From positions 343-5,704 of the forward strand of contig MTSL01000214.1 of NCBI GenBank assembly GCA_002794465.1: 5,362 nt of DNA. The letters are read 5' to 3'. Under the pieces are notes generated by a model. It was given only the letters and a program-made list of their open reading frames with translations. It was not told the DNA's origin and ran no database searches. Below are positions 726 to 5,362 of this stretch, piece after piece. Source of the DNA: Paramicrosporidium saccamoebae KSL3. Lineage: Eukaryota > Fungi > Cryptomycota. Position 1 is the first letter of the stretch. Each line of letters opens with the position of its first letter. The position numbers and the translations under genes are program-made.

Positions 726-811
726 CCAACACACCGAATTACATCCCCTCTAGCTACAAGGATCCCTCTCCCAAGACTATCCTTGCCGTATCACAGTAAC
801 GAGTGCTGTAT

Positions 812-817
812 TTTAAT
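812..817 (-). other. Possible polyadenylation signal (ATTAAA) for the minus-strand gene
   Basis: ATTAAA on the minus strand about 200 nt after the TAG at 1013. This is a hexamer match only. Confidence 0.2.
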
Positions 818-1012
818 AGAGAGCCTGCCGATCAATCCATTACATCACTATCAGAATGAATATGGTGCGGTGCATTAATCGGCAAGTTCTTTGTGTAGAA
901 AATTCTTGCTTTGTAGATATACCACCTCGCGTAACTACACCACTCGTACAACTACATGACCAACATCTAATCAACAGCCATCAAATAAACACAGTATTCT
1001 TCTTGACATGCA

Positions 1013-1804
1013 CTATAGAAACTTATACTCAACCTCTCCCGCGACATATTGCTTGCCAACTGGGATCAGCACACCGGCTCTTACAAGAATACCTAGAAGA
1101 GCTGCAAATGCTGCTTTTGTGGGCCTTCTCACTGCAGTAGGGTGGGCGGGTCGTGGCCCAGGAAAGACAGTAGAACAGTAAAGATCAAAAGCAATTCCGG
1201 ATCGCTTTCGTGCTTTAAGGTATCGGAGCAAAGCACTTTGTTGACTTTCGTCTATGATATTGGAGAGCTCTATTGCCAGGATGGATCTTGCTATGTTAGC
1301 CGTACCAATGGCCTGAGAATCAAGTGCTGCTTCGCCCATCTGCTCACCAGCTGAACGTGTTCCATAGTCACTGCGGCTGAATTCCAAGTTCACAGACGGC
1401 AATCCGTATTGGGTATGGATTGCCTCATTTGGTTCGTTCAGCTCATTTGGTTTGTTCAACTCATCTGGTTTGCTTAACTCATTTGGTTTGTTCAACTCAT
1501 TTGGTTTGTTTAACTCGTTTGGTTTGTTTAACTCGTTTGGTTCCTCCAGTTCATTTGGTTCGTTCAACCTATCCTGCCCATCCAACCCACTTAGCCCATC
1601 CAACCTATCCTGCCCATTCAACCCACTTAGCCCATCCAACCTATCCTGCCCATTCAACTCACTTAACCCATCCAACCTATCCTGCCCACCCAACCCACTT
1701 AACCCATCCTGCACGCCCAAGTTATAATCGTGTGCCATATTATCTGCATCTTCAAGATTAACAGCAAGAGTAGAAGCGAGCTCGACAAGTGCAAGTGTTT
1801 CCGG
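1013..1804 (-). CDS. 3' coding segment (ORF track 1013..2038): repeat linker plus C-terminal probable winged-helix domain; likely last exon
   Basis: Open frame PETLALVELAS...EVEYKFL*. The ORF-track N-terminus (2038-1869) overlaps the Myb-coding frame and is probably shadow sequence. CAG|CCG at 1807-1802 is an in-frame acceptor candidate. Confidence 0.65.
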   Translation of the reverse strand, partial: PETLALVELASTLAVNLEDADNMAHDYNLGVQDGLSGLGGQDRLDGLSELNGQDRLDGLSGLNGQDRLDGLSGLDGQDRLNEPNELEEPNELNKPNELNKPNELNKPNELSKPDELNKPNELNEPNEAIHTQYGLPSVNLEFSRSDYGTRSAGEQMGEAALDSQAIGTANIARSILAIELSNIIDESQQSALLRYLKARKRSGIAFDLYCSTVFPGPRPAHPTAVRRPTKAAFAALLGILVRAGVLIPVGKQYVAGEVEYKFL

Positions 1805-4800
1805 CTGTCTGTAATCATGACTAATACCTGCCCACGCCAAAGCAACTTGCCTACAGAGGTACGCGCACTGAACTTCTGGTACCCTTCGCAAAGCTATACG
1901 AGGGATCAATAGCAATCCTCTTCCACTTATTGACACCATGCTTTCGTATTCCAGTGAGCAATTCTTCGTCCTCAGGCTCAGTCCATACCACCTTTCGTCT
2001 CTTTGCAGTTTGAACTTCTTCCCTTGAAGCCTGCACATTTTCCGCTGCCGTTTCAGCTTGCGTTACCCCCACCCTTCCTGGCATGAGATCAGCTCCACCC
2101 GGCCCGTAATTCAGCCGCCAAAAGCTCTGCGTCCGGGAAAAAAGACTGGAACGGTTCCTTCCCGTGCAATAATGCAAATACTCCACTTGTAAAGTGTGCA
2201 TTTCTTGCACAATTAAGGCGTCAATGTCCACGGCAGGATGCAGGTTCTTCAATGCCCGAGTTCCAAATAGGTATGGCAGTCTCCACCGCCTGTGCTTTAA
2301 GGGGGCCGTATCAAACAAAATCTTCACTGCATCAAGAGCCAGGATGCTGGCGTGCAATACGCGGTATCCTCGTAATCTTGGCGAACTCTGAAGCAATTGC
2401 AAGGGGTCAGGCATGTCCAGGTGCAAAAAAGTGCCAATGTCTATGGCATAGGTGTGAATCAGAACAGCAATTTTTGTCGGTAGCGAAATGTCTGGATGAG
2501 CCATTTTCACGCAAATGTTCATTCTTCGGAAAAGCCTGTCATCGCCCTTGGTAATACGCTTCAGCACCATCTCCACCAATCCATCTTCCGCAGGGCCGAG
2601 ATCAAAAACACCCTGCATCCATCCCAGGGAATAGAATCCCAGCATGTTGGTCTCTGCAATAAACTCTTTCAATCTGAGGCCAGATCGTCCCCACACTAGC
2701 TCACGTCCATAGCTCCGTTGCGAGCCCGAAAGCAAGGTGGCTGCATGGAGGCTCTCGAGGATGCTCGCACTGGCAATTAGGCGCTTTATATCTTGGAGAG
2801 GCCAAGGATTGCAAAGTTTGTACAGGCACTGCGACAGAGCTTGTGTAAGGATTTGCGTCTGGCTACACACGTATCTCATCAACAAGCCCGATGGGACCAC
2901 AATGACATACTGCGTAATATCCTCCGATTTTGAACAATATAGCGCCATTTGACTTGCCAAGTCTCCTACAGGGCAACGCAACTCGGCTCTAATCCCCGCA
3001 GGCCTTCTACCGACTGCTTCCAAGGTCCTCTGAGCTTTGTGACTGTTTTCCACAACCAATTGGATCAGCTTCCAAAGTTTCCTCTCAGTATCGCCAGGAG
3101 GCAGCATGAGATGCCCGTAGACAAGCTTCCCCACATTCAAAAACTCAAAGGGTGATAGTTGGCATTTCGGCCGTACCAAGGAATATACGGTTGCATAAAA
3201 ATTGACCTTTTCGCAACGCCCTACCTTGCAATTGCCAATCTCATTTGAAATCTGCATGCCGCCCTTACCAACGTAGCTCCGCAGCAGGACAGCAAAGGGA
3301 GAATCCTCAACTAGCGTTTCGTCTGCAATCCGCCTCACCTGCGGAGTGGACTGTACGCAGAAATCAACTTTCAAGTCTTGGATAAACCGCACATCAAAGG
3401 CTTCACAAATGCCCTTTTCAAGCATCCACACGTCCCCATCGCAGGTTGACATTAGCGATTCCTTCAACTGCAGCGACTGAATGTAAAACAGTACATCTGG
3501 AACTATTTGTGTCATCGACGTCACATAGCATTCCAAGACTTGGGTTCCAAAGAAATGCTCCACAAATGCGGCATTCTTCAATCCCCCCTGGGTGTATACC
3601 AGCCTATTTGTTGCCGAGTGGGTGCAGCATGGAGGTGCATTGGAGGATGTGTCCAATTGCAAGACATGCTACATTTGTTCGCCCGACACAGAGTAAAAAA
3701 ACACATCCTTTCCCAAACTGGAATTCACACGGCCAATCTTCCAGATGGATCCCAACAAGGGCCGACCACACGACCTTGCATATTGGTTCATCTTCCGAAC
3801 ATTATGTGGCATTACCCCCCTCGGAACTGACAGAATGTTGGCACCTTTAACAATTGCTTTGCATAAATCGCCAGCTTGAATAAAACCAAAAAGTCCGTCT
3901 ATATCAACAACGCTACTGTACACGAGCTTGTGTCCAAGCTGCGCTAGTTCTTGCATCGCCTGCTCTTCTGTTTTGGAAAAGCTTAGTGGGACGGGCGAAC
4001 GCGCAGCAACCGGACCAAAAGTAGGCCCTGCTTCGTCCTGTTGAGGCGTGTCCCTGTTTACACCACACATGTACTGCTCATCTGACATAAGCTCTTGCAA
4101 GCTTACGCAGGTTGCATGGTTGCTAGCCAAAGTGTCTGTATGATTGCCCAGCGCAAATTCCTCACCCTCATGAGGGTCATCCTCAACCGGGCCACCATCC
4201 TTGGTATCTTTCTCGGTATCCTTTTCGGTATCTTTCTCGGTATCCTTTTCGGTATCTTTCTCGGTATCCTTTTCAGTATCTTCTTCCACATATTCTTCAC
4301 TATCTCCATCTCTATCTTCATCTTCATCTCCGTCTCCGTCTCCTCCACCATCTACTTCTTCAGAGATACCCAACTGATACGTCGGCGCTCTCCCTATGGC
4401 TCCCGCCAGTGAATCATCCATCACAGAGTCAATCACCACTGGATGCCACGAAAAACCACCCGCATACCCTAGATAGGCCGTCGGCAATTCAGGACTGACG
4501 ACAAGGTTGAATATTTGACAGCCCTCGTGCTGCCGAGCCATACCAAACTGAGGGCAAAAAATTGTGGCATTCATCTTCTGTATGCGACACAGCTTTACTA
4601 CCCAGCTTAGATTGGGCTTGGATGAGGTGTTGGTAAAGTCTACGGCATACGCCACGTCATCCACTCGTCTTTGCGAGCCGATCCAGCTCTTGGCATATCC
4701 AGCATCCTCATACACGGTATTTTGCAGGGCAGCACCTGCTTCATTGATACTAATCTTGAAGCCGATAGACGCGGTAAACAAAAAGGCTTCCCGAACGCAT

Positions 4801-4904
4801 GAGCCATCGACCGGATGGACTGCAAGATCCACTTTGAAGGCTCCAAGCAACGAAGGAAATGACCCGCGATATGGGTCCTCGCAAATTTTACAGGATAAGG
4901 ACAT
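1013..4904 (-). CDS. Composite gene model: ~1,270-aa multidomain putative DNA-binding protein (uncharacterised core + Myb + repeat linker + probable winged helix), interrupted by one in-frame TAG and one probable intron; intact gene or recent pseudogene
   Basis: Three consecutive minus-strand ORFs. The first two are in frame across a single TAG (3671-3669). The third joins in frame if 1868-1805 is spliced. All internal tandem repeats have units that are multiples of 3 and keep this frame open. Confidence 0.6.
1016..1237 (-). other. Probable winged helix-turn-helix domain (74 aa) at the C-terminus
   Basis: SALLRYLKARK (helix 1), IAFDLYCSTVF (helix 2), TKAAFAALLGILVRAGVL (helix 3 with the typical L-x-x-L-V-x-x-G-x-L ending) and IPVGK...EYKF (beta-hairpin wing). 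Pattern recognised by eye. Confidence 0.45.
1421..1564 (-). repeat. Coding tandem repeat, 8 x 18 nt, (N/E/S)(K/E)P(N/D)E(L/A)
   Basis: Translates to NEPNEL EEPNEL NKPNEL NKPNEL NKPNEL SKPDEL NKPNEL NEPNEA; exactly 144 nt. Confidence 0.95.
1565..1708 (-). repeat. Coding tandem repeat, 4 x 36 nt, DGLS(G/E)L(G/N/D)GQDRL
   Basis: Four near-identical 36-nt units with no spacers; exactly 144 nt, abutting the 18-nt array. Confidence 0.95.
1685..1705 (-). other. Canonical G-quadruplex motif on the coding strand
   Basis: The minus strand reads GGG TTAAGT GGG TT GGG T GGG, matching G3-N1-7-G3-N1-7-G3-N1-7-G3. Whether it folds is untested. Confidence 0.6.
1805..1868 (-). other. Candidate spliceosomal intron (64 nt; alternative donor GTACCT at 1862 gives 58 nt)
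   Basis: TCA|GTGCGC...TTACAGACAG|CCG. Removing it deletes the TAG/TAG/TGA stops and joins the Myb frame to the 1013 frame in phase 0. The length suits fungi, but there is no clean CTRAY branch point. Confidence 0.45.
1851..3662 (-). CDS. Central coding segment (603 aa): uncharacterised globular core plus C-terminal Myb domain
   Basis: 1.8-kb open frame with ordinary globular composition, ending in a recognisable Myb motif. Its 'start' is TTG, two codons after an in-frame TAG, so it is unlikely to be an independent start. Confidence 0.8.
   Translation of the reverse strand: MQLDTSSNAPPCCTHSATNRLVYTQGGLKNAAFVEHFFGTQVLECYVTSMTQIVPDVLFYIQSLQLKESLMSTCDGDVWMLEKGICEAFDVRFIQDLKVDFCVQSTPQVRRIADETLVEDSPFAVLLRSYVGKGGMQISNEIGNCKVGRCEKVNFYATVYSLVRPKCQLSPFEFLNVGKLVYGHLMLPPGDTERKLWKLIQLVVENSHKAQRTLEAVGRRPAGIRAELRCPVGDLASQMALYCSKSEDITQYVIVVPSGLLMRYVCSQTQILTQALSQCLYKLCNPWPLQDIKRLIASASILESLHAATLLSGSQRSYGRELVWGRSGLRLKEFIAETNMLGFYSLGWMQGVFDLGPAEDGLVEMVLKRITKGDDRLFRRMNICVKMAHPDISLPTKIAVLIHTYAIDIGTFLHLDMPDPLQLLQSSPRLRGYRVLHASILALDAVKILFDTAPLKHRRWRLPYLFGTRALKNLHPAVDIDALIVQEMHTLQVEYLHYCTGRNRSSLFSRTQSFWRLNYGPGGADLMPGRVGVTQAETAAENVQASREEVQTAKRRKVVWTEPEDEELLTGIRKHGVNKWKRIAIDPSYSFAKGTRSSVRVPL
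1866..2003 (-). other. Myb/SANT domain of the TRF/telobox type, helices 1-2 and start of helix 3, preceded by basic KRRK (possible NLS)
   Basis: KRRKVVWTEPEDEELLTGIRKHGVNKWKRIAIDPSYSFAKGTRSSV matches the single-repeat Myb pattern W-x-x-x-E-x-x-x-L-x-x-G-h-x-K-(Y/H)-G-x-x-x-W-x-x-I...F...R-(T/S)-x-V of TRF1/TRF2 and plant TRFL proteins. The expected xLKD(K/R)WR ending is absent. Confidence 0.85.
3669..4904 (-). CDS. N-terminal coding segment (411 aa): unknown domain, acidic repeat tract, VVDIDG-containing region
   Basis: ATG in CCAACATGT context (A at -3), 1.2-kb open frame, frame-preserving 12-nt repeats. It ends at a TAG after which the same frame continues (ATG TAG CAT GTC TTG CAA). Confidence 0.75.
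   Translation of the reverse strand: MSLSCKICEDPYRGSFPSLLGAFKVDLAVHPVDGSCVREAFLFTASIGFKISINEAGAALQNTVYEDAGYAKSWIGSQRRVDDVAYAVDFTNTSSKPNLSWVVKLCRIQKMNATIFCPQFGMARQHEGCQIFNLVVSPELPTAYLGYAGGFSWHPVVIDSVMDDSLAGAIGRAPTYQLGISEEVDGGGDGDGDEDEDRDGDSEEYVEEDTEKDTEKDTEKDTEKDTEKDTEKDTKDGGPVEDDPHEGEEFALGNHTDTLASNHATCVSLQELMSDEQYMCGVNRDTPQQDEAGPTFGPVAARSPVPLSFSKTEEQAMQELAQLGHKLVYSSVVDIDGLFGFIQAGDLCKAIVKGANILSVPRGVMPHNVRKMNQYARSCGRPLLGSIWKIGRVNSSLGKDVFFYSVSGEQM
4203..4286 (-). repeat. Coding tandem repeat, 7 x 12 nt (E-K/E-D-T) with a perfect 24-nt higher-order unit x3
   Basis: The plus strand alternates GGTATCTTTCTC / GGTATCCTTTTC three times (4203-4274), followed by the diverged AGTATCTTCTTC. It is contiguous with the D/E/G-rich tract up to about 4352. 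Confidence 0.95.
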
Positions 4905-5045
4905 GTTGGACTATATAGAAGCAGATAGGTTGCGTGTTGAGTATCGTTTAGAAACGGCTCCCCTTGGCTGAAGAATCTTTTCCAGCCAGCCCTGCCCTGG
5001 GGCTATGGATTCTGGAGATCTTGTTGGCTAGGACTCCGTAGCTCA

Positions 5046-5090
5046 TTAGCTAAATAATGGGACCAACCTGCTAGTAGTACGAGAGCTCAT
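5046..5090 (-). other. Short upstream ORF (MSSRTTSRLVPLFS*) or first exon, in frame with the main ORF
   Basis: CAAACAAAC-ATG is a strong fungal-type start context, in the same frame as ATG 4904. It is followed by CAG|GTTGGT (5067) and a branch-like GCTAAT (5050-5045). Confidence 0.3.
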
Positions 5091-5144
5091 GTTTGTTTGT
5101 TACAGTCAGCAATGGCCTAATTGAAGCACCACGGCTCTAAAGCA

Positions 5145-5183
5145 GGCGGCCCGCCATTATGCCGTTATGCCGTTATATAACGG
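5145..5183. promoter_or_regulatory. Putative promoter module: TATA-centred 14-bp palindrome, three 8-bp direct repeats, three TAACGG sites
   Basis: CCGTTATATAACGG (5170-5183) is a perfect palindrome. GCC(A/G)TTAT occurs three times at 5153/5161/5169, and GGCGG-C-CCGCC at 5145-5155. The module lies about 270 nt upstream of ATG 4904 and about 80 nt upstream of ATG 5090. Confidence 0.5.
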
Positions 5184-5362
5184 TGGTGATACTACGCATT
5201 CATTCTGTCGGGTGGGGAGAGTCTATCCACAATTATTAATCCACCTTGTCCGCAGCGTCTATTCACGATGTATGAAAGATAAGGGCGCTTCGCAGTTTGT
5301 CCTGTGGTGTCGCACCTGTCTACGTAGAGGAGACTCTTATTGCACACGCCAAGTCGGGACTT

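Follow-up and report, generated by a model that had tools for sequence, protein, structure and literature searches.

The window analysed here, that is, the whole stretch of 5,362 nucleotides (nt) of contig MTSL01000214.1, carries on its minus strand three collinear open reading frames (ORFs), which an original prediction made from the sequence letters had merged into one orphan protein by means of a TAG bypass and a short intron. Comparison with relatives, chiefly P0003 (1,252 amino acids, aa; encoded on contig L002) and the product of contig L015 (an extension of L001), upheld the single gene and put a lesion in the place of each proposed join. As judged from these alignments, the ORFs are remnants of one ancestral gene with a predicted product of about 1,250-1,300 aa, and the window copy is a probable pseudogene, unless both lesions are assembly errors. 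The ORFs and lesions lie in the window as follows.

4904-3672, minus strand: ORF1, 411 aa.
3668-1854, minus strand: ORF2, 605 aa.
2038-1016, minus strand: ORF3, 341 aa, overlapping the end of ORF2 in a different frame.
3669-3671, minus strand: lesion 1, an in-frame TAG nonsense codon, with similarity to P0003 and L015 on both sides.
1860-1865, minus strand: lesion 2, a 17-nt frameshifting deletion, revealed by MAFFT DNA alignment against L001.

The single-gene verdict follows from homologues that encode the whole span as one protein. The single TAG separates ORF1 from ORF2 within one frame; one tblastn segment of P0003 (aa 33-1056) spans ORF1, the TAG, and ORF2 at 61% identity, and a second matches the C-terminus of ORF3. 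L015 contains an unbroken 1,215-aa ORF from Met to stop, and P0009 (1,103 aa), P0012 (1,287 aa), and P0015 (1,391 aa) retain the same order of conserved blocks at 17-26% identity, intact family proteins measuring about 1,100-1,400 aa. P0003 is thus collinear with ORF1, ORF2, and ORF3. Screening of the window proteins against NCBIfam returned low-complexity noise only, and Rfam and tRNA scans were empty for the window and L001-L004.

Both lesions sit inside alignable coding sequence, and it is for this reason that we assign the window copy to the pseudogenes. Around the TAG the window reads EQM*HVLQL, where P0003 and L015 have DQLHQALQL and DQMQNALQW, respectively; the codon at this position is CAC (His) in L002 and CAA (Gln) in L015. 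Both the window gene (1015-1013) and L015 also end genuinely at a TAG. A bypass or recoding site and a reassignment of the stop codon were therefore rejected, so that of the bypass first proposed only the single in-frame TAG stands. An origin of this C-to-T-like change by repeat-induced point mutation was likewise rejected on dinucleotide ratios (TpA/ApT 0.75, (CpA+TpG)/(ApC+GpT) 1.36). At the ORF2/ORF3 junction, coding DNA of the homologues aligns straight through the supposed short intron and leaves instead a 17-nt gap within otherwise alignable Myb coding DNA, its placement being ambiguous by a few bases. The deletion takes out most of Myb helix 3, the telobox recognition helix, at a site where L015 and P0003 continue uninterrupted (QLKDRERTL and QLKDRARTL, respectively). 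The sole GT..AG interval able to restore the frame measures 55 nt (GTACCA...GGCAG) and consists of DNA alignable to the homologues' coding sequence in both frames, and no intron occurs at this junction among the close relatives. Hence, the intron was discarded, and expression of the window copy as an intact protein is not supported.

Apart from the TAG and the 17-nt deletion the window ORF is clean. The ratio of nonsynonymous to synonymous substitution rates (dN/dS) was 0.10-0.20 in comparisons of the window with L002 and L001 (0.10 with L002), synonymous sites being near saturation. The low ratio and the clean remaining frame show that the gene evolved under purifying selection through most of its history and that its inactivation was recent.

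The predicted architecture, read along the gene and numbered on the window, comprises the following elements.

4425-4904, minus strand: N-terminal Cys/His domain (aa 1-160), tentatively of an OTU-like cysteine protease/deubiquitinase fold, from conserved residues and Foldseek.
4155-4361, minus strand: acidic low-complexity linker with (DTEK)n, from Tandem Repeats Finder and translation.
2100-3983, minus strand: family-specific core of ~650 aa (about aa 308-960), conserved among relatives at 17-26% identity.
3911-3882, minus strand: core motif S-x-D-[VI]-D-G-x-F-G.
Within the core, minus strand: core motif TNR.
3212-3180, minus strand: core motif K-x-N-x-Y.
2999-2970, minus strand: core motif G-x-R-x-E-x-R.
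2762-2688, minus strand: core motif ESL..TL..G / ELVW.
2288-2256, minus strand: core motif W-x-x-P-Y-L.
2186-2160, minus strand: core motif [VI]E..HY.
1866-2003, minus strand: telobox-type Myb domain truncated to helices 1-2, from Pfam Myb_DNA-binding positions 1-27 of 46.
1415-1826, minus strand: linker between the Myb and the C-terminal domain, (DRLDGLSGLNGQ)n and (NELNKP)n, made of 18/36/54-nt tandem repeats.
1016-1267, minus strand: winged-helix-like C-terminal domain of ~85 aa, followed by the TAG stop at 1015-1013.

The core, the telobox Myb, and the winged-helix-like tail had all been recognized in the original prediction, which nevertheless overlooked the N-terminal Cys/His domain. The central readers of TTAGGG-type telomeres are telobox Myb proteins, and the Myb of this family fits that class. 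Indeed, the 24 best matches of a family profile to the PDB were all telomere-repeat binders, headed by TRF1 (E-value 2e-11) and continued by TRF2, zebrafish Terfa, plant TBP1/TRP, and yeast Tbf1 (E-values from 2e-11 to 2e-4 overall). The window Myb matches Pfam PF00249 at the end of ORF2 (E-value 2e-6, positions 1-27 of 46), and intact relatives, P0003 among them, cover positions 1-45 of 46. Helix 3 reads [VI]xLKD[KR]xRN[LM] in members of the family, as in NVDLKDRFRNL and NINLKDKMRNL, and the telobox motif is visible in P0014, P0017, and P0023. In L015 and P0003 helix 3 lacks a Trp, the third Myb tryptophan being replaced (RERT and RART, respectively). At the family level, the telobox-type assignment of this domain is sound.

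In the N-terminal domain, C5, C8, H30, W101, and H154 are invariant in four sequences, and H154 is so in eight. An AlphaFold model of the N-terminus built on four sequences, with a predicted local distance difference test score (pLDDT) of 50, shows helices followed by four strands. When this model was compared with the PDB in Foldseek, all 50 matches listed were OTU-fold proteases (E-values 0.014-0.5, template modelling scores 0.2-0.47), including a Wolbachia OTU, several viral OTUs, and cellular OTUs. Residues 1-36 are unmodelled, so that the placement of C5, C8, and H154 in an active site is not visible in the model. On the other hand, sequence searches gave no OTU match, either in Pfam (the window and 25 members) or in profile comparison with PDB sequences at E-values up to 1-10. 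We therefore describe the domain, tentatively and on its modelled fold, as OTU-like. Inspection revealed no signal peptide, and a conserved Cys stands at residue 5. In the acidic linker that follows, (DTEK)n is encoded by an in-frame 12/24-nt tandem repeat at 4203-4282; this linker is not conserved in P0003 or L015.

The core had been called uncharacterised, and so it proved by Pfam, PDB sequences, and a Foldseek check on its model: there was no Pfam match in the 25 members and no match among PDB sequences. Its AlphaFold model, computed on P0003 residues 320-1252 with 25 aligned sequences, reached pLDDT 80-95 across most of the core and predicts an alpha/beta fold plus a helical part, with conserved acidic residues falling on predicted strands. 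Searches of this structure with Foldseek against the PDB and BFVD returned nothing better than an E-value of 0.16 and no match to RNase-H-like or other nuclease folds. Nearly invariant are R-x-E-x-R, ESL..T...G, the W of ELVW, N...F, and the W of W..PYL. VVDIDGLFGF, KVNFY, and GIRAELRCP, which had been singled out from the window alone, rank among the best-conserved motifs, distant relatives included. Their attribution to a widespread family of fungal hypothetical proteins was not supported: 99 matches were found among 1.84 billion representative proteins, most of them confined to the Myb.

Downstream of the Myb, the linker-coding repeats (18/36/54 nt at 1424-1709) are in frame and specific to the copy; in L015, (GV)n and poly-N take the place of the (NELNKP)n seen in the window. 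The C-terminal domain is 53% identical to the C-terminus of P0003 and alignable in distant members. Its model comprises three helices (856-870, 875-883, and 900-912) and two strands (916-922 and 928-932) at pLDDT 43-64, and its profile matches the winged-helix ribosomal protein eS25 weakly (E-value 0.01). As anticipated, this helix-helix-helix-strand-strand module is compatible with a winged helix.

The label of orphan did not survive. The 99 matches came from an exhaustive HMMER search of ORF2 against those 1.84 billion representatives, and about 20 of the relatives, divergent at 17-26% identity and with full-length proteins among them, have the common architecture. A word-indexed protein search proved insensitive, ORF2 retrieving one partial relative, ORF1 none that was real, and a 20-sequence profile two proteins; scans of metagenome, viral, and genome contig collections found no related loci. 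With the sole exception of P0008, the 27 cluster representatives checked trace back to JGI, ENA, or Logan assemblies, whether of a metagenome or of a sequencing run. P0008, the nearest named relative, is an 83-aa fragment (PSACC_00003) of Paramicrosporidium saccamoebae (Rozellomycota) on contig L014 (MTSL01000002.1). One of the source samples, that of L005, is a photosynthetic wastewater bioreactor metagenome (PMC8103865). The first 40 nt of L015 resemble a Nextera transposase adapter (GCGTATAAGAGACAG), which suggests an untrimmed adapter in the JGI assembly.

Canonical GT..AG introns of roughly 40-170 nt with T-rich 3' ends interrupt the genes of L008-L013 at a conserved site just before K-x-N-x-Y, and L007 has an intron (437-475) inside the N-terminal domain; the lineage of the window, P0003, and L015 has none at either site. 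AT-rich short members of 550-800 aa were thus not frameshifted pseudogenes, as their halves are joined by such introns. The conserved canonical introns indicate that the distant members are genuine eukaryotic nuclear genes fragmented by prokaryote-style gene callers. Together with the annotation of PSACC_00002 and PSACC_00003, this style of gene calling shredded the family into hypothetical fragments and so gave it the look of an orphan. An 11-nt tandem repeat (GGGATCAAAGT)n occupies the 5' ends of contigs L009 (1-240) and L010 (1-150), upstream of the family gene. By sequence comparison, the window gene belongs to an unannotated, lineage-restricted eukaryotic family with an apparently new architecture and core, and no account of such a family turned up in the literature searched.

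Decay is widespread among the copies closest to the window, at least five of about seven being defective and only L015 demonstrably intact. L002 has ATT (1994-1996) where the window has its ATG start, and the open frame preceding it, ~95 nt long, showed no ATG, so P0003 may lack a normal start. A source contig of 3,362 nt is common to P0004, P0010, P0040, and P0007, which match successive parts of the query and on these grounds are most likely one frameshifted copy; out-of-frame tails occur in P0004 and P0007, and also in P0005. A further damaged copy lies on the Paramicrosporidium contig L014, which matches the window at 77-90% identity in three blocks.

L014 block 1: the window 5' flank and first 84 codons.
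L014 block 2: a 620-nt piece of the core.
L014 block 3: the last codons and 258 nt of the 3' flank.

This copy (L014 932-2594) has thus suffered internal deletions of 1.1 kb and 1.85 kb with both flanks retained, and microhomologies, GACGT and AGTATGTC, mark the deletion junctions. In the public annotation this copy appears as two separate hypothetical proteins, PSACC_00002 and PSACC_00003. Just past the conserved unit, L014 has a 145-aa minus-strand ORF (2942-3379). The alignment to L014 also delimits the surroundings of the window gene, which are listed here with the adjoining repeats.

4905-5362, minus strand: 5' flank (promoter/5' untranslated region) of the conserved unit, 80.8% identical to L014 932-1391.
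755-1012, minus strand: 3' flank of the conserved unit, 83.5% identical to L014 2321-2594.
1-750, no strand assigned: tandem array of at least four units of ~170 nt, spaced 168-175 nt apart and running to the window end.

The 5' flank is about as conserved as the coding parts, and its homology to L014 reaches the window end, which places the 5' end of the unit beyond the window. On the other side homology ends at about window position 750, and the array begins there, 260 nt after the stop. The array is strongly C/A-rich on the plus strand (GC skew about -0.4 to -0.6), and the downstream 1012 nt are G/T-rich on the sense strand of the gene, with about 10% C. An (ACACTT)n microsatellite lies inside the array at 560-620. 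A plus-strand ORF (324-878, 184 aa, 'HLHLHL') falls wholly within the repeat tract and is probably not a gene. L005 presents a parallel arrangement: about 540 nt past the ORF a 164-nt tandem array (5466-6155) sets in and continues up to the end of the contig, despite the two proteins being only about 17% identical. On the sense strand, G exceeds C (skew 0.24-0.49) in the flank downstream of the gene in the window, L001, L002, and L006.

A link to telomeres, already suspected from the Myb, emerged at L006, the contig of the distant member P0012. This contig ends in GGGTTAGGGTTAGGGTTAGGGTTAGG, an array of (TTAGGG)n at 4534-4560 that lies 372 nt past the stop codon with its G-strand in the sense of the gene. 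Short-k de Bruijn assembly (Logan k near 31 assumed) keeps about 30 nt of a hexamer repeat before looping. The L006 terminus looks like a real chromosome end, with the P0012 gene apparently the last before the telomere. L003 and L015, from the same sample, are 75% identical in their ORFs, yet a block of about 185 nt in their 3' flanks agrees at ~99%, as expected of diverged paralogues abutting a homogenised repeat; this block would be a subtelomeric repeat that has been homogenised or else a terminal element that is conserved. It occupies L001 1682-1853 (L015 5579-5750) and L002 5789-5971, L002 ending within it, and differs by one 11-nt GGGTTTGTGCT indel.

The reading we prefer, and hold with moderate confidence, is that the window contains a recently inactivated, decaying member of a multi-copy, chromosome-end-associated gene family. 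In the intact proteins, the Myb domain would bind double-stranded TTAGGG-type repeats and the winged helix would supply a second DNA contact, the two of them bringing the putative N-terminal protease and the core to telomeric or subtelomeric chromatin. The genes would lie at chromosome ends, oriented outward, and copies would be duplicated and homogenised between ends by recombination and then often decay, as here.

Several points weigh against this picture. The window contains no TTAGGG hexamer, and telomere repeats adjoin a single, distant member, L006. In the subfamily of the window, replacement of the third Myb tryptophan makes TTAGGG binding less certain. The contigs of L003 and L015 are metagenomic and may stem from more than one genome; similarly, the window and L014 may be paralogues of one genome or orthologues from two species. 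The OTU assignment is weak, with a model at pLDDT 50 and Foldseek E-values of 0.014 or worse, and both lesions could in principle be assembly errors. Finally, contigs that barely exceed their ORF are partly a selection effect. We had considered them as proof of a repeat, and downgraded this argument on finding members, P0113, P0120, P0124, and P0101 among them, on contigs of 7-14 kb.

The main alternative, which we regard as unlikely, though not negligible, is that the window copy derives from an autonomous mobile element and has become defective. The core, with its conserved acidic/basic motifs D-x-D, D, and R-x-E-x-R, would then be a new transposase, recombinase, or replicase, with the Myb and winged helix aiming insertion at telomeric or subtelomeric DNA, much as the telomere-specific retrotransposon TRAS1 targets via a Myb-like domain, and internally deleted copies would be non-autonomous derivatives. 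L014, which keeps both non-coding flanks and the ORF ends after losing 1.1 kb and 1.85 kb, conforms to this proposal, as do the high proportion of defective close copies, the conserved acidic residues on predicted strands of the core, and the sharp stop of homology at about window 750, past which the DNA differs from copy to copy. A single ORF also occupies most of each 4-6 kb contig. However, neither the window nor the contigs of six relatives showed terminal inverted or long terminal repeats, the 5' end of the unit lying beyond the window. Pfam matches in the 25 members were of Myb type only, with no transposase, integrase, reverse transcriptase, tyrosine recombinase, or Rep/helicase, and the core found no nuclease fold in Foldseek despite a model at pLDDT 80-95. 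Moreover, microhomology at the deletions is typical of ordinary slippage or end-joining, and the conserved intron position and strong purifying selection suit a host gene equally well. Comparably doubtful is the broader proposal that the family is a new selfish element of early-diverging fungi or protists that homes to chromosome ends with its own telobox Myb and winged-helix readers, its core being a new class of DNA-acting enzyme able to move or copy the unit and the deleted Paramicrosporidium copy a non-autonomous derivative.

A conventional single-copy host gene for telomere binding or chromatin, with lesions due to assembly or sequencing errors or to recent loss of the gene in the strain or species of the window, strikes us as distinctly improbable. 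It would account for the dN/dS of 0.1-0.2, the intact ORF of L015, and the conservation of introns and architecture over deep divergence, and low-coverage metagenome contigs are error-prone (coverage of L013, 4.4). Yet the defects are independent and different in kind (a start-codon change, frameshifts, and two large deletions), and a flank ~99% identical accompanies copies that differ by 25% within one sample. Annotated fungal proteomes lack the family save for the 83-aa fragment, which would be odd for a housekeeping factor.

We give still less credence to a subtelomeric effector of intracellular (intranuclear) parasites, in which an OTU deubiquitinase would act on host telomeric chromatin. 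Paramicrosporidium lives within the nucleus, and parasite effectors typically belong to multigene families that are subtelomeric and decay fast. The nearest named relative does come from this rozellomycotan parasite of amoebae, and Wolbachia and viral OTU proteases are among the N-terminal matches, but inspection found no signal peptide and the OTU assignment is weak. Least credible of all is a window copy kept functional by TAG readthrough and removal of a short intron: the 55-nt GT..AG interval would restore the frame of an ORF that is otherwise clean, but its excision would delete the telobox recognition helix, it aligns to homologue coding DNA in two frames, no close relative has an intron there, and TAG is the normal terminator of the family.

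What sets the family apart is the joining of a telobox reader to a probable protease, as modelled, and to a ~650-aa domain without detectable relatives, in genes that seem resident at the chromosome ends of poorly sampled parasites and environmental eukaryotes. If telomere binding is true, these proteins would be a new class of telomere-associated factor and their genes a chromosome-end marker for Rozellomycota-like genomes, which are hardly ever assembled; if the genes are mobile, the core would be a new enzyme class. The DNA-binding modules are individually of known kinds, whereas the architecture and the core are undescribed in the libraries and literature searched.

Among known systems, TRF1/TRF2, Terfa, Tbf1/Taz1, and TBP1/TRP have, like this family, a single Myb repeat with a helix-3 telobox. 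To our knowledge, all well-studied telobox Myb proteins pair the Myb with a dimerisation or histone-like domain. Unlike TRF, Taz1, and Tbf1, the family lacks a TRFH or other known dimerisation domain, and no similarity to them outside the Myb appeared in profile or fold searches. The Myb is not C-terminal as in TRF; about 950 aa of unrelated sequence precede it and a tail of about 190-290 aa in close copies follows, with a winged-helix-like end, and in the subfamily of the window the third Myb tryptophan is replaced. Plant TRB/Smh proteins, of about 300 aa, combine an N-terminal telobox Myb with an H1/H5-type winged-helix globular domain. The family likewise has a telobox Myb and a winged-helix-like domain in one polypeptide, but differs in domain order and in its large enzyme-like N-terminal two-thirds, and its C-terminal domain gave no sequence match to H1/H5, only the weak one to eS25.

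The N-terminal domain resembles the OTU-family deubiquitinases (OTUD1/3, the Wolbachia and nairovirus OTUs, and TYMV PRO/DUB) in its predicted helical lobe followed by a beta-sheet lobe, and in an invariant N-terminal Cys, with C5 and C8 both candidates for the catalytic residue, and an invariant C-terminal His. Unlike them, it has no D-G-x-C motif by inspection and no sequence-level match, and its model is of low confidence; no fusion between an OTU protein and a telobox Myb is known to us. Bombyx TRAS1/SART1 exemplify a selfish unit equipped with a telomere-repeat reader of its own, but the family has neither a reverse transcriptase nor an endonuclease domain, nor any recognised poly(A) or target-site signatures. 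Subtelomeric Y'/TLH-like families differ in having a helicase domain, which is missing here, and bear no sequence relationship to these genes, of which one member adjoins a telomere. Even so, the present family is like them in its large single ORF, apparently last before the telomere repeats in L006, and in its several diverged and decayed copies, the flanks of whose probable paralogues seem to have been homogenised.

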